IMG/VR virus record: IMGVR_UViG_3300032236_001850
Span: 186,001-250,000 of that record
Direction: 5' to 3' (one strand)
DNA length: 64,000 nucleotides
Under the pieces are notes generated by a model. It did no database searches, had not been told where the DNA came from, and was given only the letters and a program-made list of their open reading frames with translations. This document shows, one piece after another, positions 24,210 through 42,817 of this stretch; within the stretch, counting starts at the first letter, position 1; the number at the start of each line of letters is the position of its first letter. Position numbers and translations under genes: made by a program.

Positions 24210-24662
24210 ATGGAATGGAAAAGTCTAACTACGAAAAAGTCCATCGACCTATCTAGCTACTTAGCTGATTGGATGGCAAACAACCCTGAAGACAAGATCT
24301 ACATAGGGTGTGATTCGCAAAATCACAACGGCACTACGACATTCGCTACGGTTATTGTATTACATCAACCGAACAGGGGAGGACACGTGCTTTACAGCAA
24401 GATGACAATACCTAGAATACAAGCTAGGTACGAAAGGCTGTGGAAGGAAATCGAATTAAGTGCAGAAACAGCACACGAAATTATGGAGAATGCTGGGCAA
24501 ACTCCTGACTTCATTGATATCGACCTTAATCCAGATCCTAGACATCAATCTAATACGCTGTTAAGATCCGCTGTAGGTTTAATAGAGGGTATGGGTCTAA
24601 AGGCTAGATACAAGAGTGCATCTAACTGGTCCATCTCTATTGCAGATTCTATATGTAAATAG
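24210..24662 (+). CDS. RNase H-like YkuK/DUF458 family protein
   Basis: IYIGCDSQ, RLW.E...S, DIDLN, AD. Confidence 0.85.
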   Translation: MEWKSLTTKKSIDLSSYLADWMANNPEDKIYIGCDSQNHNGTTTFATVIVLHQPNRGGHVLYSKMTIPRIQARYERLWKEIELSAETAHEIMENAGQTPDFIDIDLNPDPRHQSNTLLRSAVGLIEGMGLKARYKSASNWSISIADSICK

Positions 24663-34469: not shown

Positions 34470-34538
34470 GGGATAAAAGCACAAGCGGATGTGCAATCGC
34501 TAAACAGCGAGAGGCAGGGTTCGAGTCCCAATATTCCA
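34470..34538 (+). pseudogene. tRNA-like RNA with collapsed anticodon loop
   Basis: D arm GCAC/GTGC; TCGCT-AAAC-AGCGA; T loop TTCGAGT. Confidence 0.55.
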
Positions 34539-34553
34539 CTAAAAATTGAAAAC

Positions 34554-35027
34554 ATGACACTAAAGGATAAAATCAATGCTGATTATATTACAGCATTCAA
34601 GGCAAAAGACACTGTAGCAAAAAGTGCATTAAGTGGTTTAAAGTCAAAAATTCTAGAAGCTGAGAAATCTGGACCTGCTGGTACAGAGCTTAGTGATGCA
34701 GATGTTTTAAAGATTGTCATAAGCACAATTAAACAAAGAAAACAATCGGTTGAGGAATTTACAAAGGCAGGTAGAATGGATCTTGTTGAACAGGAAACAT
34801 TAGAGCTAGCACCAATTGAAGCTTATCTTCCTAAACAAATGGACGATTCTGAAATCACTTCAGCAGTGAAGGAACTTATAGCTGAGTTTGATGGAGCAAA
34901 CCTTAATATACAAGCTCTTACAGGTAAAGTTATTGGTGCTTTCAATAAAAAGTTTCCAGGTATGGCAAGTCCAGTTAAAGTGAAAGAAATTATTACAGAA
35001 AATATTGTTGAAAAAATTATAAATTAA
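34554..35027 (+). CDS. yqeY: GatB/YqeY domain protein
   Basis: LKDKI..D...A.KAKD, IKQRK.S.E.F.KAGR.DL...E..E...IE.YLPKQM. Confidence 0.9.
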   Translation: MTLKDKINADYITAFKAKDTVAKSALSGLKSKILEAEKSGPAGTELSDADVLKIVISTIKQRKQSVEEFTKAGRMDLVEQETLELAPIEAYLPKQMDDSEITSAVKELIAEFDGANLNIQALTGKVIGAFNKKFPGMASPVKVKEIITENIVEKIIN

Positions 35028-35435: not shown

Positions 35436-35509
35436 GGTCCCGTAGTTCAGCGGAAGAATTCCAGAATACGGATCTGGAGACGGGGGTTCGAATCCCTCCG
35501 GGATCTCCA
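35436..35509 (+). tRNA. tRNA-Arg(ACG)
   Basis: Cloverleaf; encoded CCA. Confidence 0.9.
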
Positions 35510-35516
35510 AAAAATA

Positions 35517-35590
35517 CGGTAGGTAGCTCAGTTGGTTAGAGCGTCTCGCTGATACCGAGAAGGCCGGAGGTTCAAGTCCTCCTCTACCGA
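35517..35590 (+). tRNA. tRNA-Ile(GAT)
   Basis: Cloverleaf; loop CTGATAC. Confidence 0.92.
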
Positions 35591-35594
35591 CAAA

Positions 35595-35759
35595 AACGTT
35601 CTTAGAAATATTGGTTAGTGGTAAATTGAAAGGTTACTTCGTTTTTTAGCCCAGTTGGTAGGGCGTAAATTTTTGGTATTTAAGGTCGTGGGTTCAACTC
35701 CCACAAAAACTATTAGCTCCCTTTCTAAATATTCCCTTCCCAATATCTCTAAGCACGTT
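35595..35759 (+). ncRNA. Y-RNA-like unit 1 (colinear tRNA module, TTG loop)
   Basis: AGTGGT..GTTACTTCG..ATTCCCT scaffold enclosing D, anticodon and T arms; near TROVE gene. Confidence 0.75.
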
Positions 35760-35849
35760 AAATTTTAAAAAAATATTGATTTTTTTATGAAACAAAGAGG
35801 ATTTCCTCACATATAAAGATCACAAAACGTTCATTGAAAAGATAATTTA

Positions 35850-35984
35850 TTGTAAGTGGTAACGGAATATGAGTTACTTCGTTTTTTAGCTCATTTGGTA
35901 GAGCAAGAGTCTCTTAAACTTTAGGTAGCTGGTTCAACTCCGGCAAAAACATCCATTGAAACTCACCCGGACATTCCCTTACAA
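35850..35984 (+). ncRNA. Y-RNA-like unit 2 (colinear tRNA module, CTT loop)
   Basis: Same scaffold; TTGTAAG/CTTACAA terminal stem. Confidence 0.8.
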
Positions 35985-35990
35985 AACATA

Positions 35991-36149
35991 TTATAAGTGG
36001 TCAGTAAAATAGTTACTTCGCATGCATTGAAAGCACGGTGTCGGTGGTTCGAATCCATCTTCCCCCACTAAACAAATTAAAAATTTGGGGGAATAGCTCA
36101 GTTGGTAGAGCACGTTAGAAAAAACGCTATTTACATCATTCCCTTATAA
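35991..36149 (+). ncRNA. Y-RNA-like unit 3 (circularly permuted, YrlA-like)
   Basis: T arm, then loop-closed acceptor TTCCCCC/GGGGGAA, then D arm. Confidence 0.8.
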
Positions 36150-36156
36150 AGCATAC

Positions 36157-36300
36157 GACAGTAGTAAGTATAGAAGTTACATCGCACATCGGTTCGACTC
36201 CGATAGTTTCCGCCAAAACTGGAAATTTAGACAAGTGGTTAAGTCATCTGACAGTAAATCAGACATTAAATTGTTCACACTTCTTACATCATTCTCTGTT
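36157..36300 (+). ncRNA. Y-RNA-like unit 4 (permuted, retains anticodon arm with GTA)
   Basis: T arm, AGTTTCC-GCCA/GGAAATT, D arm, TCTGA-CAGTAAA-TCAGA. Confidence 0.75.
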
Positions 36301-36308
36301 AGTTTTAT

Positions 36309-36346
36309 AAAGGGATTAGGACGCCAAGCGACTTAATCCCTTTTTT
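36309..36346 (+). terminator. intrinsic terminator after the Y-RNA array
   Basis: GGGATTAGG/CTTAATCCC plus T run. Confidence 0.75.
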
Positions 36347-36393
36347 ATTAGAGTAAATTTAAAAGTAAAATATAAAAACAAAAATTAGAAATT

Positions 36394-37317
36394 ATGAAAA
36401 GAAATTCATTAGCATCAAAAGGATTATCAATGTCTCAAGCTCAATCTGTATCAAATCTTTGCAACCAAAGATCTAAAGATATTACTGCAGCTTTAGCAGA
36501 CATCAACAACGCATCAAAAACGATAAGAATCTCCAAGGAGGATCATCAGTTAACTGCTGCAAAACCTTTGCCTGAGAATGTTGTTGAACTTCTTAAGAAT
36601 AAGGCAAGGTTGCATGCAACACAGGCTTTCCTAATGGAGAACATAAAAGCCAAGGACGAATTAATAAACTCGATCAAAAGAGAATATTTTGATTACGAGG
36701 ATCAAAATCCAGCTCCCACAAGAGAGCCTAATGTTCAACCTGAAGTTCTTGTTCAAGTTGGTGAGGATTGGGGTTGGGAACAACTCTCAATGGACGAGTA
36801 TAATGAATTCATTGAGGCTGAGGCTTATGCTTCACACATAGGTCAATTTATTCATAAAGGTGGAACATTAGATCGTCTGAGAGCTGAGCTACCAAAAATC
36901 CAGCTTCTTGAGTTCATGGAGGTTGAGATTGGAAAGAAAACTCCCGTTAAAGTCAACGTGCACCACAAGTCTGAGGAGCTGTTAAAAACTCATGAGGAGT
37001 TGGCAGCTCTTCATAGAGGTTACGAACAAAGAGTTAACTACTTCAAATCTAAGGTTAAGAATGCTGTAACCAAGGAGAACGCAAGGATTTCTAAAATTAA
37101 TGCTGACGCACAGGCAGAAGCTAACGAAAAGAATGCTCTTGTGATGAACGAGTATTCAAAAAAGAAAGAAACCTGGTTAGCAGATTACAAGAAAGCAAGT
37201 CTTGATTTTGAGACTGAGCGTCAAAATAGAATCAGCGAAGCTGTAAATCTTAAGATCCAGGTGGATGCTAGATTCCAACCAGTTGTTGATGAATTTTTGA
37301 AACAACTAGAAAAATAA
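36394..37317 (+). CDS. coiled-coil protein of unknown function
   Basis: 307 aa, helical; lies between the Y-like RNAs and the large ncRNA. Confidence 0.85.
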   Translation: MKRNSLASKGLSMSQAQSVSNLCNQRSKDITAALADINNASKTIRISKEDHQLTAAKPLPENVVELLKNKARLHATQAFLMENIKAKDELINSIKREYFDYEDQNPAPTREPNVQPEVLVQVGEDWGWEQLSMDEYNEFIEAEAYASHIGQFIHKGGTLDRLRAELPKIQLLEFMEVEIGKKTPVKVNVHHKSEELLKTHEELAALHRGYEQRVNYFKSKVKNAVTKENARISKINADAQAEANEKNALVMNEYSKKKETWLADYKKASLDFETERQNRISEAVNLKIQVDARFQPVVDEFLKQLEK

Positions 37318-37321
37318 AAAT

Positions 37322-37701
37322 AAATTGAGGTGCTGAAGGGGTAAGCACAAGCCGATTCCCCCGATGCTTTGATTCGGAGAGATAAGGTCCTTTAATTAAT
37401 GGCGTCAAGCCATTATCTTATAAGATAAATGACTATTAATCATATACAGCAATCAGAGGTTCCTTCGGGAGCCTCTATAACTCCGCTTCTTCTATAAAAT
37501 TAAACAAAACTGAGATAGAACTCAATTGTTAGACAAGTTACTGAAAGCCATAGAGAAAGAGAAATCTTTACCACTAGGCAGATAATTGGCTAACTACAGA
37601 GACTTAGTTTTTGTCCTTGCCTTTGCGATAGAGGAAGGTCTTTGACATTGATCTTGCATTTGACGTGGTCTATATGCTTTATCTTTCCGATAACTCAATT
37701 T
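37322..37701 (+). ncRNA. ~380-nt multi-branched structured RNA
   Basis: Nested long-range helices with G-U pairs; cUUCGg hairpin; no ORF of 60 aa or more. Confidence 0.7.
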
Positions 37702-37731
37702 TAAAATATTAACGAATAAACAATTATAATC

Positions 37732-39312
37732 ATGTCACGTTACAACCAAAAAGTAAAAAGAACTGTAGAGACAGTTACAAACCACCAAGGTGGTACAGGT
37801 GTGAAGTATGATCCAAAATTGGAATTAATTGCGATTCTTACTACTGGATTAGACAATTCATACTATGAAAAATTATCGGATAGAGAGAACAGATTTGTTC
37901 AACTTATTGACGAATTATCTAAGAAAGATATCGAATTCGTCGCGAAAGCGCTCGTATACGCGAGAACTGTTGTTGGTCAAAGATCAGTAACACACTTCGG
38001 TTCGGTGTCATTAGTTAAGCATTTATCAGGTTCTGCTATAGGTAGAAGATTCTTCTCTAAAAGAGATAAGAATGCTAAAACCGGAGGTATTGTATACCGT
38101 TTAGATGACGTATTAGAGATCATCGCAGCTTACCAACACTTCAATCCAGGTAAACCATTACCTAACTCGATGAAGAAAGGTTTCAAAGCAGCTTTGGAAT
38201 CAGCTGATGCGTACGAATTAGCTAAATATCAAGGTAAAGGTAAAGCAGTTTCGCTTGTAGATGTTGTTAACTTGGTTCGTCCAAAACCAACAACACCACA
38301 AATGGAAGGTGTTTTCAAAGATCTTATGACTGGTAAATTAAAACAGTTCAACACGGTTGAGGATAAAAACTCAAAAGCTGGACAAGATGTTGCTGCAAAA
38401 GTTAAATCTGGAGAAATCACTAAAGCACAAGCTGAGATTGAATTGACACAGTCTAAAGAAAGCAACTATGCTGAATTGATTAAAACAAGAAAAATTGGTT
38501 ACTTGGCATTGCTTCGTAACTTAAGAAACATCATCAACACGAGTTCAAACTCTGAATTGGTTAGCGGTGCATGTGAACTTTTAATCGATGAAAAATTGAT
38601 CAGAAAATCTTTGGTTTTCCCTCACCAAATCGATATTGCTTTGGAGATTCTTTTACAAGAAACTAGTGCTTCTGCATCCAGACCATTCGTTACAGCTTTA
38701 AATAAAGCCTACGAATTAGCAATACCAAACTTGGTTGAATTGTTCTCACACGGTAGAACAGCGGTTGTTATAGATACATCTGGATCTATGCACGGAATGG
38801 GTCACGGTGTTAAAATGAATGGTAAAGCTATCAATAAACACTGTATCGATAAGGCTGCTCTTATTGGAGCAACTTTAGCAAAAGGTATTGGTGCTGATTT
38901 ATATCAATTTGCAACAACAACTGAGAGTATTAGATACAACCCAGGTGATAGTATAAACACTATCAAAAACACATGTTTAAGCTTACAAGGTAGAGTTGGA
39001 CACGGTACGGACTTCGGTTCAATCTTCTCAACTTTACAGTCAAGTGGTAAATATGATCGTATCTTTATCATATCGGATTTACAAGGAGGTGATAGAATCG
39101 TTACAAACAGTTCTTTCCAATCCTATAAATCTAAGCATGGTGAACCGTTCATCTACACGGTAGATATTCAAGGATATGGTACAACCATGTTCAAACCAGG
39201 TAACAAATTAGTTCAACTTTTTGGTTACTCTGCTGATATCTACGAGATGATCAAAAAAGCTGAGATTGATCCAAAAGCAATTTTGAGAGAAATTGAAGCT
39301 ATCGTGATCTAA
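37732..39312 (+). CDS. Ro60/TROVE domain RNA-binding protein with vWA domain
   Basis: LAKYQG....VSL.DV..LV.PKP, ALLRNLRNI, DTSGSM MIDAS, GTD, IISD.Q. Confidence 0.93.
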   Translation: MSRYNQKVKRTVETVTNHQGGTGVKYDPKLELIAILTTGLDNSYYEKLSDRENRFVQLIDELSKKDIEFVAKALVYARTVVGQRSVTHFGSVSLVKHLSGSAIGRRFFSKRDKNAKTGGIVYRLDDVLEIIAAYQHFNPGKPLPNSMKKGFKAALESADAYELAKYQGKGKAVSLVDVVNLVRPKPTTPQMEGVFKDLMTGKLKQFNTVEDKNSKAGQDVAAKVKSGEITKAQAEIELTQSKESNYAELIKTRKIGYLALLRNLRNIINTSSNSELVSGACELLIDEKLIRKSLVFPHQIDIALEILLQETSASASRPFVTALNKAYELAIPNLVELFSHGRTAVVIDTSGSMHGMGHGVKMNGKAINKHCIDKAALIGATLAKGIGADLYQFATTTESIRYNPGDSINTIKNTCLSLQGRVGHGTDFGSIFSTLQSSGKYDRIFIISDLQGGDRIVTNSSFQSYKSKHGEPFIYTVDIQGYGTTMFKPGNKLVQLFGYSADIYEMIKKAEIDPKAILREIEAIVI

Positions 39313-39405
39313 TAAATCACCGTAAACAAAAAAGCCATTCGAAAGAATGGCTTTTTTTATTGTTATGGGAAATGATATATACAATAAAAAAATCAAATCA
39401 GTAAT

Positions 39406-39759
39406 ATGATACATCTATATGAATTCGAAAAATTCAATGAAAGTTTAAACATTGAAAATTACTGTCAAACATATCTTAAAGATTCGGGGTTTGATCATAG
39501 AATACTAAATAAAAATATTTTCATAACTCGTGGGGAAGGTAAACCTAAATTTACTTACGATGAAATTAAAAAACATCTTAGACCACTAGTTACATTTTTG
39601 GATAGAGATATGGGTGTAAAGGAAATAATTCTTAAGGAGAGTCCATCCAATAGAACCAGCAGAACAACAAGACACAGATGCACGGTTAAGGAATTCATGG
39701 GTGATACTAACACTGCAGCGAAATGCGAGCATTTAAGAGAAGTTGAAATAATTTTGTAA
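39406..39759 (+). CDS. putative virion protein
   Basis: MIHLYEFEKFNES; GATATATA upstream. Confidence 0.7.
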   Translation: MIHLYEFEKFNESLNIENYCQTYLKDSGFDHRILNKNIFITRGEGKPKFTYDEIKKHLRPLVTFLDRDMGVKEIILKESPSNRTSRTTRHRCTVKEFMGDTNTAAKCEHLREVEIIL

Positions 39760-39855
39760 TTTTTTCAAAAATATTTTTTTTATTCGAAACATTTCCTTAA
39801 ATTTGCATAAAATATTAAAATCAATTAGATATATAAATCTATAAAAATAAAAATC

Positions 39856-39948
39856 ATGTCACAAATACAGTACATATTAGATACATTACATTTAGATCAC
39901 ACAAGTTCAACTTGTGAATCGTCTATTGTGATGAGGAGAGAGTATTGA
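39856..39948 (+). CDS. leader peptide 2 (30 aa; not in ORF track)
   Basis: MSQIQYILDTLHLDHTSSTCESSIVMRREY between promoter and terminator. Confidence 0.75.
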   Translation: MSQIQYILDTLHLDHTSSTCESSIVMRREY

Positions 39949-40004
39949 TATTAAGTAACGTAATAAATATCAAAAAGGTCTCCTCGAAAAAGGAGGCCTT
40001 TTTT
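39933..40004 (+). terminator. attenuator 2: terminator 39972-40004 with antiterminator strand 39933-39939
   Basis: AGGTCTCCT/AGGAGGCCT plus T run; GAGGAGA is complementary to TCTCCTC. Confidence 0.78.
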
Positions 40005-40035
40005 ATTGTTCATTGAAATATTGTAAAAGTAAATT

Positions 40036-40123
40036 GGAGAGGTGCGCAAGTGGTCAAAAGCGCCTAGACTTGAAATCTAGTGTGAGCTAATTACTCCCGT
40101 GGGTTCGAATCCCACTCTCTCCG
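40036..40123 (+). tRNA. tRNA-Ser(TGA)
   Basis: Cloverleaf with long variable arm. Confidence 0.93.
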
Positions 40124-40237
40124 CTTAGGTTACCCTTCTTGTTCCGTATGGGGTTATAAAGACGAATCAGTCAACGGAGCCCATGATGGTACCTATACCG
40201 AAGAAAATAGGAAAGATTCTATATGTCAGCCCTCAAT

Positions 40238-40323
40238 GGAGAGGAATCCTAAACGGTGATAGGTCATGCCTGGAAAGCATCGGGTGCGGGCAACTGCATG
40301 GAGTTCGATCCTCCTTCTCTCCT
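40238..40323 (+). tRNA. tRNA-Ser(GGA)
   Basis: Cloverleaf with long variable arm. Confidence 0.82.
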
Positions 40324-40331
40324 CAAAAAAT

Positions 40332-40404
40332 GCCTAAGTAGCTCAGTTGGTAGAGCAGCTGATTTGTAATCAGCAGGTCGCAGGTTCGACCCCTGTCTTA
40401 GGCT
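40332..40404 (+). tRNA. tRNA-Thr(TGT)
   Basis: Cloverleaf. Confidence 0.95.
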
Positions 40405-40412
40405 CTAATTCC

Positions 40413-40495
40413 GGTGCCTTGCCTGAGTGGCTGAAAGGGGCGGTCTGCAAAACCGCTAGAGAAATCTCACGTCAGTTCGAATCTGACAGGCACCT
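40413..40495 (+). tRNA. tRNA-Cys(GCA) with long variable arm
   Basis: Loop CTGCAAA; U73; GAGA-AA-TCTC extra arm. Confidence 0.88.
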
Positions 40496-40514
40496 CTAAT
40501 AAAAATTAGTAATC

Positions 40515-40961
40515 ATGGAACAAGACAAAAAACAGAAAATCGAACAGATCAGAAAGTTCCTTGAGGAAAAAAGGGAAATTGATCGAAGAAATTTTGAGGA
40601 ACTTAGAAGAAAAAGATGGGACAATCTTAAACCCTTCAAAACACCTCAAGATGTACCGGAAATACCAAGAGTCGGAGAAAAGGAATATAAAGAATATTAT
40701 ATACCAAGACTCATCGAAGCTGGAGCAATTCCAAAAACAGAACTTGAAGATGGAGCATTCTATCTTGGAGATCACAGAAGAGCAAAAATTGGTAAATGGA
40801 ACGACGCTATGAATGTCTTCGAGTATTGGAGATTTAAAATGGGAAATTATTTCATGGATAAATGCAATCACTTCGAAGACGATGATGGATTCGCTTTATT
40901 TACACCAATTAAAAAAGTAACAGAAGAAGAATTTAATAAGACAGGAAAAAATGAAAATTAA
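40515..40961 (+). CDS. hypothetical phage protein
   Basis: L.DG..Y.G..RRA....W, H.EDDDG..LF.P. Confidence 0.75.
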   Translation: MEQDKKQKIEQIRKFLEEKREIDRRNFEELRRKRWDNLKPFKTPQDVPEIPRVGEKEYKEYYIPRLIEAGAIPKTELEDGAFYLGDHRRAKIGKWNDAMNVFEYWRFKMGNYFMDKCNHFEDDDGFALFTPIKKVTEEEFNKTGKNEN

Positions 40962-41229
40962 ATTAAGAAATGTGATGCTTGGTCTAAAGGATCAACTTCC
41001 ATTAAAAAGAGCATTTCGAAATTTTTTCATAACAGGTAACGCTTTAGGTTTATTCGATAAAAGAAGCCATTATAGAATGGACGGCAAGGAGAAACAAGGA
41101 TTTCCAACAAAGGAATCGGGTAGAAAAGCAGCAGACGCAATGCAAAGAAAACATGGTAAATATTTTAGTGTTTATAAATGCATCTTCTGTGATGGTTATC
41201 ATCTAGGAAAAAATAGAGACAATAAATAG
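40951..41229 (+). CDS. hypothetical protein with CxxC..H motif
   Basis: YKCIFCDGYHLG. Confidence 0.75.
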   Translation: MKIKLRNVMLGLKDQLPLKRAFRNFFITGNALGLFDKRSHYRMDGKEKQGFPTKESGRKAADAMQRKHGKYFSVYKCIFCDGYHLGKNRDNK

Positions 41230-41284
41230 CATCTCCCTAGGGAGAAGGCACTGGCTGACGATCTGGCCTTATAGATCGTAACAT

Positions 41285-41358
41285 GGTGGACGTAGCTCAA
41301 TCGGTAGAGCGCTGGTTTGTGGTACCAGAGGTAGCGGGATCGTAACCCGTCGTTCACC
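41285..41358 (+). tRNA. tRNA-His(GTG)
   Basis: Cloverleaf; G-1:C73. Confidence 0.92.
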
Positions 41359-41370
41359 CAATTTATAAAT

Positions 41371-41688
41371 ATGAGAAAATTATTGATTGCACTATTTCTA
41401 TTTACGTCAATCTCATATGCACAGATGACAACATCAAGCATATCAGGCAGCATAGAAATAGACGGAGTTCCAGCTGGAAAGGTAAAGCTTATAATAAAGC
41501 ATCTACCTACAAATTACGCAACGGAAGCAGAAACAAATAACAGAGGTGACTTCAGTATAGAGGATCTCGACGTTGGTGGTCCTTACGGATTAACAATAAC
41601 AATAAACGGAATCATATATTATAGAAAATATGAATATCTAAATCTTGGCGAAAATGATGTTAAGAAAATAGAGATATTCACAAAATAA
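41371..41688 (+). CDS. exported carboxypeptidase-regulatory-like domain protein
   Basis: AQ.TTSSISG, H.PT, TN..G.F....L.VGGPY, as in N-termini of Bacteroidota TonB-dependent receptors. Confidence 0.75.
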   Translation: MRKLLIALFLFTSISYAQMTTSSISGSIEIDGVPAGKVKLIIKHLPTNYATEAETNNRGDFSIEDLDVGGPYGLTITINGIIYYRKYEYLNLGENDVKKIEIFTK

Positions 41689-41691
41689 CAA

Positions 41692-41778
41692 GCCCCGATG
41701 GCGAAACAGGTTAGACGCCCCAGATTTAAACTCTGGTGTTCCGAAAGGAGCGTGCCGGTTCGACTCCGGCTCGGGGTA
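41692..41778 (+). tRNA. tRNA-Leu(TAA)
   Basis: Cloverleaf with long variable arm. Confidence 0.92.
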
Positions 41779-41833
41779 CAACAATTTCCAGAACGCCTCT
41801 GCTCAGCATGCGCAATTTTCTGGGCTTGTATTC

Positions 41834-41919
41834 GGAGATGTAAGCATAGTGGTACTGCAGCGGTTTGCTAAACCGTTCGGCGTTCATTCGCCGCGGAGGT
41901 TCGAATCCTCTCATCTCCG
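41834..41919 (+). tRNA. tRNA-Ser(GCT)
   Basis: Cloverleaf with long variable arm. Confidence 0.9.
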
Positions 41920-41927
41920 CTAATATT

Positions 41928-42001
41928 CGGAGCAAGGTCCACTGGCGAAGGATGCCGCCCTGTCACGGCGTGCGAACCGGGTTCGAATCCCGGTGTTCCG
42001 G
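41928..42001 (+). tRNA. tRNA-Asp(GTC)
   Basis: Cloverleaf. Confidence 0.88.
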
Positions 42002-42133
42002 CAGGGGTGACAAAAAATTATTTTTGAAAATTTTCAAAAAAATATCAAAAATAATTTTTTTATCCCGAAAGAATATCATACTTTTGCAATACAATAATAA
42101 ACAAAGAAACAACGTTCATTAACATAAAGAATT

Positions 42134-42290
42134 AAAAGAAATATTTTTGGAGAAGATCAAGTCTATTGGTTGCCATACCCTGACGCAATAGACCGTTCTA
42201 ATATCAGAAATGAGATTAGACCAGCACAGTCACGCAAGACTGGTAAACCAAAGAGTAAAGGGATGTGAAAGTGGTTTGGATATTTCTTTT
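42134..42290 (+). ncRNA. unidentified multi-hairpin RNA
   Basis: AAAAGAAATATTT/GGATATTTCTTTT closing stem with four internal hairpins. Confidence 0.6.
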
Positions 42291-42298
42291 TTTATAAC

Positions 42299-42373
42299 GG
42301 TCTCTTAGCTCAGTTGGTTAGTAGCACCTGACTCATAATCAGGGGGTCGCTGGTTCGAGCCCAGCAGGGACCA
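42299..42373 (+). tRNA. tRNA-Ile2(CAT), probably lysidine-modified
   Basis: CAT anticodon on an Ile2-like body. Confidence 0.8.
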
Positions 42374-42374
42374 C

Positions 42375-42519
42375 TAGGAAATAATGGTTTCCGCTGAAGA
42401 CAAGGTGTCGACGCCCTCTTCAGCTCTACAGGATTCACACACCCTCTGCCGGTGCACTGTAAAACTATTACTAAGCAGCAAAGATTGGAGCGATATTGGT
42501 ACTCCATCATTATTTCCTA
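42375..42519 (+). ncRNA. unidentified multi-branched RNA
   Basis: TAGGAAATAATGG/TCATTATTTCCTA; GCTGAAGA/TCTTCAGC; TACAG/CTGTA; TGGAG/CTCCA. Confidence 0.6.
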
Positions 42520-42524
42520 AATTT

Positions 42525-42596
42525 GCTCCCATCGTCTATCGGTTAGGACGTCAGGTTTTCATCCTGGAAAGTCGGGTTCGACTCCCGGTGGGAGTA
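42525..42596 (+). tRNA. tRNA-Glu(TTC)
   Basis: Cloverleaf. Confidence 0.93.
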
Positions 42597-42687
42597 CAAA
42601 AAATTGAGAGAGTGGAGAAATCCCTGCAAGTTTCAAATTAGCATGCGATGAAATTAAATTGCAATGAAGCATATCAGTTTTAAAGTA

Positions 42688-42814
42688 TAAATAAGTGGTA
42701 ATTAAGAGAGTTACTTCGTAGATCATTTGGTTAGATCAATTGTTTCACTCACAATGGGTAGCTGGTTCGAGTCCAGTCGGATATTAAATACTTTCTTTAG
42801 TATTCCCTTATTTA
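42688..42814 (+). ncRNA. Y-RNA-like unit 5 (D, anticodon and T arms, no acceptor stem; CAC loop)
   Basis: AAGTGGT..GTTACTTCG..ATTCCCTT scaffold as in units 1-4. Confidence 0.75.
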
Positions 42815-42817
42815 AAC

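Follow-up and report, generated by a model that had tools for sequence, protein, structure and literature searches.

We analysed a 64,000-nucleotide (nt) stretch of DNA, positions 186,001-250,000 of IMG/VR record IMGVR_UViG_3300032236_001850 (a viral contig of 434.5 kilobases, kb), which we refer to as the window and whose numbering is used for all unit coordinates. The window contains a gene for a Ro60/TROVE protein and five units, putative Y RNAs, that share a scaffold and carry different transfer RNA (tRNA)-like inserts. All five lie on the strand of the TROVE gene: units 1-4 are located 1.4-2.1 kb upstream of it, and unit 5 is located 3.4 kb downstream within a tRNA array, with tRNA-Glu on one side and tRNA-Asp on the other. 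The units were searched for with R1, a covariance model built from 12 short units (58-94 nt, with no tRNA insert), all from other phages, whose structure comprises a terminal stem (P1), a bulge, a clamp and a second stem (P2). The features of the locus are as follows:

35597-35758 (+): unit 1; R1 match at 35611-35744, E 5e-7; ARAGORN call Gln-TTG; Rfam tRNA 62.4 bits
35842-35994 (+): unit 2; R1 match at 35849-35986, E 4e-7; ARAGORN call Lys-CTT; Rfam tRNA 57.1 bits
35990-36151 (+): unit 3; R1 match, E 1e-9; Rfam YrlA 31.9 bits at 36035-36117
36154-36304 (+): unit 4; R1 match, E 2e-3; partial Rfam tRNA match at 36221-36277
36311-36348 (+): hairpin resembling an intrinsic terminator, GGGAUUAGGACGC/GCGACUUAAUCCC with a U run after it, which closes the unit 1-4 cluster
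37732-39312 (+): Ro60/TROVE protein gene, 526 amino acids; its vWA part has the MIDAS (metal-ion-dependent adhesion site) motif DTSGS
39328-39357 (+): terminator-like hairpin after the TROVE gene, found by the hairpin scan
42688-42815 (+): unit 5; best R1 match in the window, E 5e-11; Rfam tRNA 36 bits

Searching the window with R1 recovered exactly the five units that an earlier note, written from the letters of this DNA, had proposed (E 5e-11 to 2e-3), the next match having E = 1.7. Because a model made from foreign short units recovers exactly these five, we take the units to be a real RNA family, and the de novo covariance model that the note had suggested as a check found, beyond the five, units at other TROVE loci. 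Over both strands of the 64 kb (128 kb in all) there are four copies of GTTACTTCG, every one within a unit, and unit 4 carries GTTACATCG in its place. The hairpin at 36311-36348 was read from the sequence; its stem has one mismatch, so it was not listed by a simple hairpin scanner, and an equivalent hairpin is also found 3′ of the last unit in two related loci, L005 and L070 (L numbers denote loci throughout). At gathering thresholds Rfam returned only tRNA matches on the locus, and at permissive thresholds only a partial YrlA match on unit 3 and a chance alignment over a tRNA-Arg/tRNA-Ile tandem. A sigma-70 promoter scan gave a result no better than shuffles.

The open reading frame (ORF) at 37732-39312 matched Pfam TROVE (2.1e-10) and PHROG 850 ‘RNA-binding protein’ (2.5e-32), and its residues 17-517, which is full length, aligned to the Ro60 protein of Thermus phage phiLo (PDB 9KOP/9L5Y, E 1.5e-19). 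Together with the MIDAS motif, these matches bear out the earlier identification of the gene, which is, as judged from its sequence, a true Ro60 homologue. We found 21 viral loci related to the window TROVE. Across the window and these loci TROVE is the sole conserved protein: no partner such as RtcB, ligases or nucleases is conserved besides it, and no RNA-repair gene, RNA ligase or kinase was seen near the units. Because TROVE has no conserved partner nearby and no RNA-repair gene was seen, any effector is probably encoded by the host.

From its ends inward, the scaffold consists of P1, a bulged U, a clamp of 2 base pairs (bp), an internal loop, P2 and the motif UACNUCG, which is single-stranded and near-invariant and is placed in the internal loop with P2 on one side and the tRNA-like module on the other. 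The clamp is GG/CC, AG/CU or GU/AC. The 5′ ‘AGTGGT’ and 3′ ‘ATTCCCT’, which had been listed separately, turn out to be the two strands of one helix, formed by 5′ ‘AAGTGGT’ and 3′ ‘ATTCCCTT’ (AAG/CUU, bulged U, GG/CC). Unit 4 has a variant scaffold, with clamp AG/CU for GG/CC, stem CAG/CUG and UACAUCG for UACUUCG; both changes to its helix are compensated, because the AG/CU clamp and the CAG/CUG stem still pair. In P2, the strand from the clamp to UACUUCG pairs with the sequence just 5′ of AUUC and is different in each unit: GAAAGG/CCUUUC, UGAGUU/AACUCA, GUAAA-UAG/CUAUUUAC, GUAAG..AAGU/ACUU-CUUAC and UAAGAGAGU/ACUUUCUUUA. The terminal stem of unit 1 extends to 19 bp, 35597-35615 pairing with 35740-35758.

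Pairs were counted in 54 units from 23 sources using a model-based alignment (A2); a MAFFT alignment of the short units (A1), which placed the 3′ strand of P2 in inconsistent registers, was dropped for the pair counts. Double, compensatory changes were present at 17 of the 17 scaffold base pairs. Paired cells amounted to 86.9% against 61.5% in shuffles, none of 500 shuffles attaining the observed value, and the covariation score was 0.669 against 0.209 in shuffles and 0.10-0.15 in slid-partner controls. The first clamp pair is GC in 28 units, AU in 24 and GU in 2, and is unpaired in none. The bulged U is invariant (54/54), as are the U, C, U and C of UACNUCG, whose A is kept in 52/54 units and G in 51/54.

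The same scaffold recurs beside other TROVE genes, as had been anticipated for a Y-RNA-like scaffold shared by the five RNAs: R1 detected 40 units at 16 other TROVE loci, all on the TROVE strand and including loci whose TROVE is only 28-38% identical. Units near TROVE on the same strand were found at 12 of these 16 loci and also in csAssE-Sib, crAss001 and LR745206. Among 100 loci fetched by a bare DNA pattern R1 found 25 units, and wherever a unit was significant and the stored sequence was long enough, the pattern-found locus encodes TROVE beside the units. The loci outside this statement are L052 and L074, whose sequence is too short for a verdict, and L116, whose match is weak. Most of the 114 viral and at least 120 genomic matches from the DNA-pattern scans were discarded as chance, and no bacterial or archaeal candidate passed R1 among the matches listed from the exact-pattern scan. 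In csAssE-Sib, a complete gut-phage genome, three units lie directly upstream of a gene annotated ‘Ro sixty-related protein’; the annotated tRNA-Tyr and tRNA-Lys lie within scaffold units, with the third, permuted unit upstream, and about a dozen gut contigs of IMG/VR (the L038 and L125 families) have the same block of three units. Members were also found in a 635-kb uncultured phage and in the Bacteroides phage crAss001, where they lie in an unannotated gap just downstream of the TROVE gene gp96:

OR575929.1 72726-73005 (L137 7637-7915): csAssE-Sib unit block, with the annotated tRNA-Tyr and tRNA-Lys inside
MH675552 ~96600-96775 (L139 8601-8775), minus strand: crAss001 units, two divergent short units, E about 1e-4

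The family is widespread in phages with large tRNA arrays, crAss-like phages included, and experiments on it are feasible because crAss001 can be cultivated.

Assembled metatranscriptome contigs of related strains cover the upstream cluster. One corresponds exactly to units 2-4 (35847-36298), and two cover unit 1, the first spanning tRNA-Ile and unit 1 (35511-35749) and the second showing no differences (35585-35736); the contigs 35847-36298 and 35585-35736 end at unit borders. Depth over the units exceeded that over the flanking ORF in two runs, and parts of the unit cluster are present in about 20 RNA libraries. These contigs support transcription of the units, although they are not decisive.

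The alternative that the units are decaying tRNA-gene duplicates, or a repeat or mobile cassette without function at the RNA level, could draw on the setting, a tRNA array with homing-endonuclease genes that is prone to duplication and rearrangement. We nevertheless regard it as highly improbable, given the strong, strand-specific compensatory covariation in both stems, motifs that stay invariant across phages with TROVE proteins so far apart in sequence, units that track TROVE and the presence of unit fragments in RNA libraries.

The scaffold carries five classes of cargo:

Short units: no tRNA module
Colinear tRNA, with an A/U-rich acceptor starting from the G (or C) of UUCG: units 1 and 2; L005, L006, L008, L009, L013, L021, csAssE
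Acceptor-less colinear, with CG...CG only: unit 5; L007, L008, L009, L018
YrlA-like permuted: unit 3; L005, L006, L013, L052, L070, L117
Variable-loop-permuted: unit 4; L005, L008, L009, L013, L018

The module is joined to the rod at the acceptor end in units 1, 2 and 5, at a nick in the anticodon stem in unit 3 and at the variable loop in unit 4. The distal end of the conserved rod carries either an exchangeable, complete tRNA mimic or nothing, in agreement with the earlier description of the inserts as modular tRNA mimics of different topologies, each with a 7-nt anticodon-type loop.

Units 1 and 2 carry colinear modules at 35640-35712 (loop UUUUGGU, anticodon UUG, C1×U72 mismatch) and 35880-35952 (loop CUCUUAA, anticodon CUU, C1×A72 mismatch). 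Both form tRNA cloverleaves above the Rfam tRNA threshold, with readable tertiary-contact nucleotides (U8, A14, G18G19, U54U55C56, A58 and G15-C48), and they share a chassis, being 69% identical to each other as compared with 49-56% to the phage’s canonical Gln and Lys tRNAs. They also have an identical 6-bp GUUUUU/AAAAAC acceptor despite their different anticodons, with flanks locked in P2 and P1. The unit 1 loop is identical to that of the phage’s canonical tRNA-Gln and is unchanged between the window and L021 (TROVE identity 31%), the stem beneath it having covaried. The module of unit 5 (42715-42781) is colinear and acceptor-less: it has a D arm, an anticodon arm (loop UUCACUC, anticodon CAC) and a T arm, covers only positions 4-67 of the tRNA model (36 bits) and has its acceptor reduced to UUCG/CGGA.

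In unit 3 a hairpin, UGC-AUUGAAA-GCA (loop 36026-36032), is followed by CG, the variable (V) loop, the T arm, a closed acceptor, the D arm, A26 and CG; the acceptor, GGGGGAA/UUCCCCC, is closed by a loop of 20 nt and has no CCA. Rotation of this unit yields a perfect cloverleaf and tRNA(UGA) calls; its 5-bp anticodon stem, CG|UGC-AUUGAAA-GCACG, has a nick (|) that falls between positions 28 and 29. The loop, previously described as a GAA remnant, is AUUGAAA with UGA at the anticodon positions, and it tops a complete composite stem. For this type, exhaustive rotation with ARAGORN was ambiguous, false anticodon arms arising from sequence 3′ of the D arm, and composite stems were instead fixed by position. 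In most unit-3-type RNAs the 2 nt after A26 pair with the 2 nt before the V loop and are abutted by a 3-bp hairpin with a 7-nt loop, and composite 5-bp, all-Watson-Crick anticodon stems with 7-nt loops are present in the window, L005, L006, L070, L052 and L013. The 27-28:42-43 pairs covary (CG/CG or AG/CU, depending on the phage), and the loops AUUGAAA, CUGUUAA, CUUUUAA, CUUGUAA and CUGCUAA resemble real anticodon loops. Exceptions are the csAssE/L086-type units, which have no hairpin, and L070_1941 and L052_2264, in which the hairpin is weak or unclear.

Unit 4 begins with the T arm (36188-36204), the 3′ strand of the acceptor (36205-36211), G, CCA (36213-36215) and a loop, and continues with the acceptor’s 5′ strand (36221-36227), the D arm and an anticodon arm with the loop CAGUAAA (36252-36258; anticodon GUA, A33). 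Its acceptor region reads AGUUUCC-G-CCA-AAACU-GGAAAUU, and the scaffold serves as the variable arm. All 146 of the 146 rotation solutions for unit 4 call tRNA-Tyr GTA, and every rotated solution of this type gives one tRNA call. A 7-bp acceptor followed by NCCA is present in four of the six lineages with unit-4-type RNAs and never in the unit 3 type. The mimics had been called unchargeable, which is unsupported as written: the conserved CCA argues against it for unit 4, where the claim is doubtful because a 7-bp acceptor with CCA is the configuration of the RNase P-cut YrlA of Mycobacterium smegmatis (PMC4201824).

The module structures also bear on the main rival, which takes units 1 and 2, and a processed unit 4, to be genuine tRNA precursors; the scaffold would then be a leader-trailer cassette serving processing, stability or folding with the help of Ro60, and a free, chargeable tRNA for translation would result. 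The scores of 62 and 57 bits are within the range of the phage’s canonical tRNAs, Lys-CUU and Val-CAC are otherwise absent from the tRNA set of the window, and two csAssE-Sib modules are annotated as tRNA-Tyr and tRNA-Lys; moreover, the colinear units of L008 and L009 have perfect 7-bp acceptors from the conserved G, and the NCCA of unit-4-type RNAs follows a 7-bp acceptor. However, the Gln and Lys modules share one acceptor (reported as all-A/U) with a mismatched first pair, whereas the canonical acceptors of the phage are G+C-rich and identity-specific, and a canonical Gln-UUG is already present in each phage. In addition, acceptor-less, anticodon-stem-nicked and tRNA-less units sit on the same scaffold, and we know of no bacterial pathway that could mature them. 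The scaffold is also conserved with TROVE and not with tRNA genes generally: of the window’s 31 tRNA calls, just 2 fall within scaffold units. Compared with ordinary phage tRNAs, the units share the array, the strand and apparently the transcripts, and units 1 and 2 score as tRNAs; they differ in that their ends are sequestered in a conserved rod of 15-plus bp and in having an A/U acceptor regardless of anticodon. On balance we consider a precursor role unlikely.

Reading the units as Y RNAs places them next to YrlA (Rfam RF02553), the Y RNA of bacterial Ro60/Rsr that mimics a tRNA (PMC4201824; bioRxiv 10.1101/312249). As with YrlA, the units lie beside a Ro60 gene, often several per locus and alongside shorter YrlB-like RNAs, and combine a putative Ro60-binding stem, in which the 5′ and 3′ ends pair, with a tRNA-like effector module. 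The YrlA model, the search proposed in the earlier note, matched unit 3 over model positions 23-87, corresponding to its T arm, closed acceptor and D arm, but this best score of 31.9 bits is below the gathering threshold of 69 bits, and units 1, 2, 4 and 5 gave no match. The conserved elements also differ, being the bulged U and UACNUCG here and GNCGAAN0-1G in YrlA. The note’s remark that YrlA is normally permuted is true, and units 3 and 4, unlike the colinear units 1, 2 and 5, run from the T arm through a loop-closed acceptor-like stem to the D arm. The likeness stops at the anticodon: canonical YrlA has no anticodon loop, its anticodon stem continuing into the Ro60-binding stem (bioRxiv 10.1101/312249), whereas here an anticodon loop is present in most permuted units, units 3 and 4 included, and in all colinear ones, with 7-nt anticodon-type loops on 5-bp stems in units 3 and 4 and their relatives. 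The colinear, acceptor-less and variable-loop-permuted topologies are undescribed for YrlA. The family would work like YrlA but departs from it in three features, scoring below the family threshold, lacking the GNCGAA motif and carrying anticodon loops.

The YrlA of M. smegmatis has a 7-bp acceptor, is cleaved by RNase P and gains a CCA end (PMC4201824). Unit-4-type RNAs likewise have a 7-bp acceptor with a short closing loop and could be nicked in the same way, in which case the two halves would stay together through the scaffold. They differ in that CCA is encoded in the DNA (G/U-CCA, in the same four lineages), in having an anticodon arm and in that the scaffold exits from the variable loop, whereas that of M. 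smegmatis YrlA exits from the anticodon stem.

Y RNAs with Ro60 are already known from phages, namely Yrl1 and Yrl2 of Thermus phage phiLo, and Y RNAs have been reported for mycobacteriophages, CcrColossus and phage G (PMC12135203). The phiLo system resembles the present one in combining a phage Ro60 with small RNAs encoded upstream and a 5′-3′ stem flanking an internal loop with a conserved motif; it differs in that the phiLo RNAs were found by their CGAA motif and are described as stem-bulge-stem, with no complete tRNA module. Our literature searches turned up neither this scaffold nor any Y RNA that is described as having a complete tRNA or an anticodon loop. Ro60-linked Y RNAs as such are known, but the phage family with the UACNUCG scaffold is previously uncatalogued.

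In Cyanidioschyzon merolae and some archaea, circularly permuted tRNA genes give rise to ordinary tRNAs through a bulge-helix-bulge splice and a circular intermediate. The permuted units share with those genes a 3′ half that precedes the 5′ half and an acceptor loop that holds the future ends. However, the unit flanks contain no 3-4-3 bulge-helix-bulge and instead form P1 of 7 bp, a bulge of 1 nt, the 2-bp clamp, an asymmetric internal loop and P2; to our knowledge, bacteria and phages lack a splicing pathway of the C. merolae type.

The Rfam YrlA model also aligned full length, at 23 bits, to the tandem tRNA-Arg/tRNA-Ile at 35455-35577 (+), taking its T arm from the first tRNA and its D arm from the second. 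This chance alignment illustrates the published idea that YrlA originated from a dimeric tRNA transcript, and the colinear, nicked and permuted forms on one scaffold may represent living intermediates for the proposed origin of Y RNAs from tRNA transcripts.

We conclude, with a probability of roughly two in three, that the five units belong to an uncatalogued family of phage Y RNAs that are partners of Ro60/TROVE and combine a covarying rod with exchangeable tRNA mimics. Several observations weigh against it. The A2 alignment was fitted to the model and is therefore biased towards the structure, although by-eye compensations in unaligned sequence agree with it. The RNA evidence consists of assembled contigs of related strains, for which DNA carry-over is possible, and in run X16 depth was 151 over the TROVE gene and 83 over the units. 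The units of distant phages lie 2-8 kb from TROVE and are not adjacent to it, and the R1 search detected no unit in L017 and L020, which have TROVE. Finally, GNCGAAN0-1G near the 5′ end, the motif proposed to contact bacterial Ro60 (PMC4201824), is present in only 1 of 66 units; bare CGAA is present in 18 of 66, within UUCGAA. Reading the opposite strand to recover CGAA was rejected, as it is the + strand that has the T and D arms, the covariation and the TROVE gene. In other Y RNAs of bacteria and phages CGAA is carried in an internal loop (PMC4201824, PMC12135203), and by its similar position we infer that UACNUCG could be the Ro60 contact.

Under the Y-RNA interpretation, Ro60 would bind the conserved rod and the internal-loop motif, as it does the bulged stem or CGAA loop elsewhere, and the L-shaped tRNA module, with its authentic-looking anticodon loop, would recruit or occupy host proteins that read the tRNA body or the anticodon, candidates being synthetases, modification enzymes and nucleases that cut anticodons. 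In this way Ro60, together with an exonuclease if it tethers one, might be brought to these host proteins, or the proteins might be titrated. The units would be cut from tRNA-array transcripts by the same processing as the neighbouring tRNAs, and unit-4-type RNAs would probably be nicked by RNase P in the acceptor loop, exposing the CCA end. For the tRNA-like domain of bacterial Y RNAs, the authentic anticodon loops and varied attachment points narrow down which face of the tRNA the effector reads and make the question testable.

A less probable rival, which takes up the functional reading of the earlier note, is that the units act as decoys for, or repair-coupled sentinels against, host anticodon nucleases, their loops soaking up or reporting the nucleases at an early stage of infection while Ro60 protects or disposes of the cut RNA. 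The loops copy real ones: unit 1 has the canonical Gln loop, unit 3 is one position off Ser-UGA and unit 4 differs from the canonical Tyr loop at position 33 only. Loops of the Lys, Gln, Tyr and Asn types are seen again in different phages, and the corresponding anticodons are classic targets of anticodon nucleases; however, the displayed anticodons are also those most used in an AT-rich genome, and the enrichment is therefore not diagnostic. Orthologues of unit 5 in related phages vary the anticodon (CAC, CAA, GAA, UAA), which fits an arms race, but many units have no tRNA module at all and no RNA ligase or kinase gene was seen in the surroundings of the units. In bacteria, damaged tRNAs elicit a response of the rsr-yrlA-rtcBA operon (PMC7790460). 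In crAss001, TROVE belongs to the early genes (PMC8375218), and in phage Bas63 the Ppl defence system is countered by a Ro60-like protein; the authors of that study guessed that the ‘tRNAs’ beside the gene may be Y RNAs (PMC11482910). An anti-defence role for the units may be attractive in view of the crAss001 and Bas63 precedents. Speculatively, and with no greater confidence than in the decoy idea, the scaffold could be a general ‘tRNA display platform’ on which phages of Bacteroidota, the abundant crAss-like phages of the gut included, swap anticodon arms and the point of attachment so that Ro60-tethered mimics neutralize or sense anticodon-specific defences; a unit-4-type RNA nicked by RNase P would then be a chargeable, CCA-ended tRNA tied to Ro60 through its ‘variable arm’.

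The results also expose an annotation error, in that some ‘tRNA genes’ beside phage Ro60 genes are modules of these putative Y RNAs, examples being units 1 and 2 of the window and the tRNA-Tyr and tRNA-Lys of csAssE-Sib.

The window has a G+C content of 35%, and megablast of the locus against deposited phages gave no match. It contains 31 tRNA calls, 30 on the + strand and 1 on the minus strand, among which homing-endonuclease-like genes (HNH and DUF559 types) and a YqeY/GatB-like gene are scattered. The latter (34491-35027, +) encodes a protein resembling YqeY and the GatB C terminus (Pfam 4e-32; PHROG ‘tRNA amidotransferase’) and sits just upstream of the block formed by tRNA-Arg, tRNA-Ile and the Gln-type unit 1. 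The single minus-strand call, an ARAGORN tRNA-Ala at 24278-24356, lacks Rfam support and is probably false. At 40238-40322 (+) the tRNA-Sec model scored 35.4 bits (threshold 47) on a sequence that ARAGORN did not call; by eye it is class II tRNA-like, with acceptor ends resembling GGAGAGG/CCTCTCC, the loop CTGGAAA and a long variable arm, and it may be an unannotated tRNA. The 145-nt spacer between tRNA-Met and tRNA-Glu at 42375-42521 (+) is closed at its ends by a long inverted repeat, AGGAAATAATGG ... CCATCATTATTTCCT. Although this spacer matches nothing in Rfam and is no scaffold unit, it could be another structured RNA.

Between a coiled-coil ORF of unknown function (36394-37317) and TROVE lies a 390-nt non-coding stretch (37318-37705, +) that folds well (z = -3.3), with ends that pair and no Rfam match. 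The ORF and the stretch are restricted to the closest relatives of the window (L001-L004 and L012). The stretch forms a discrete contig in two RNA libraries, with depth above that of its flanks, and in one RNA-library contig 37702 is followed, after 3 extra letters, by 37322, which is what a circle or a tandem copy would give.

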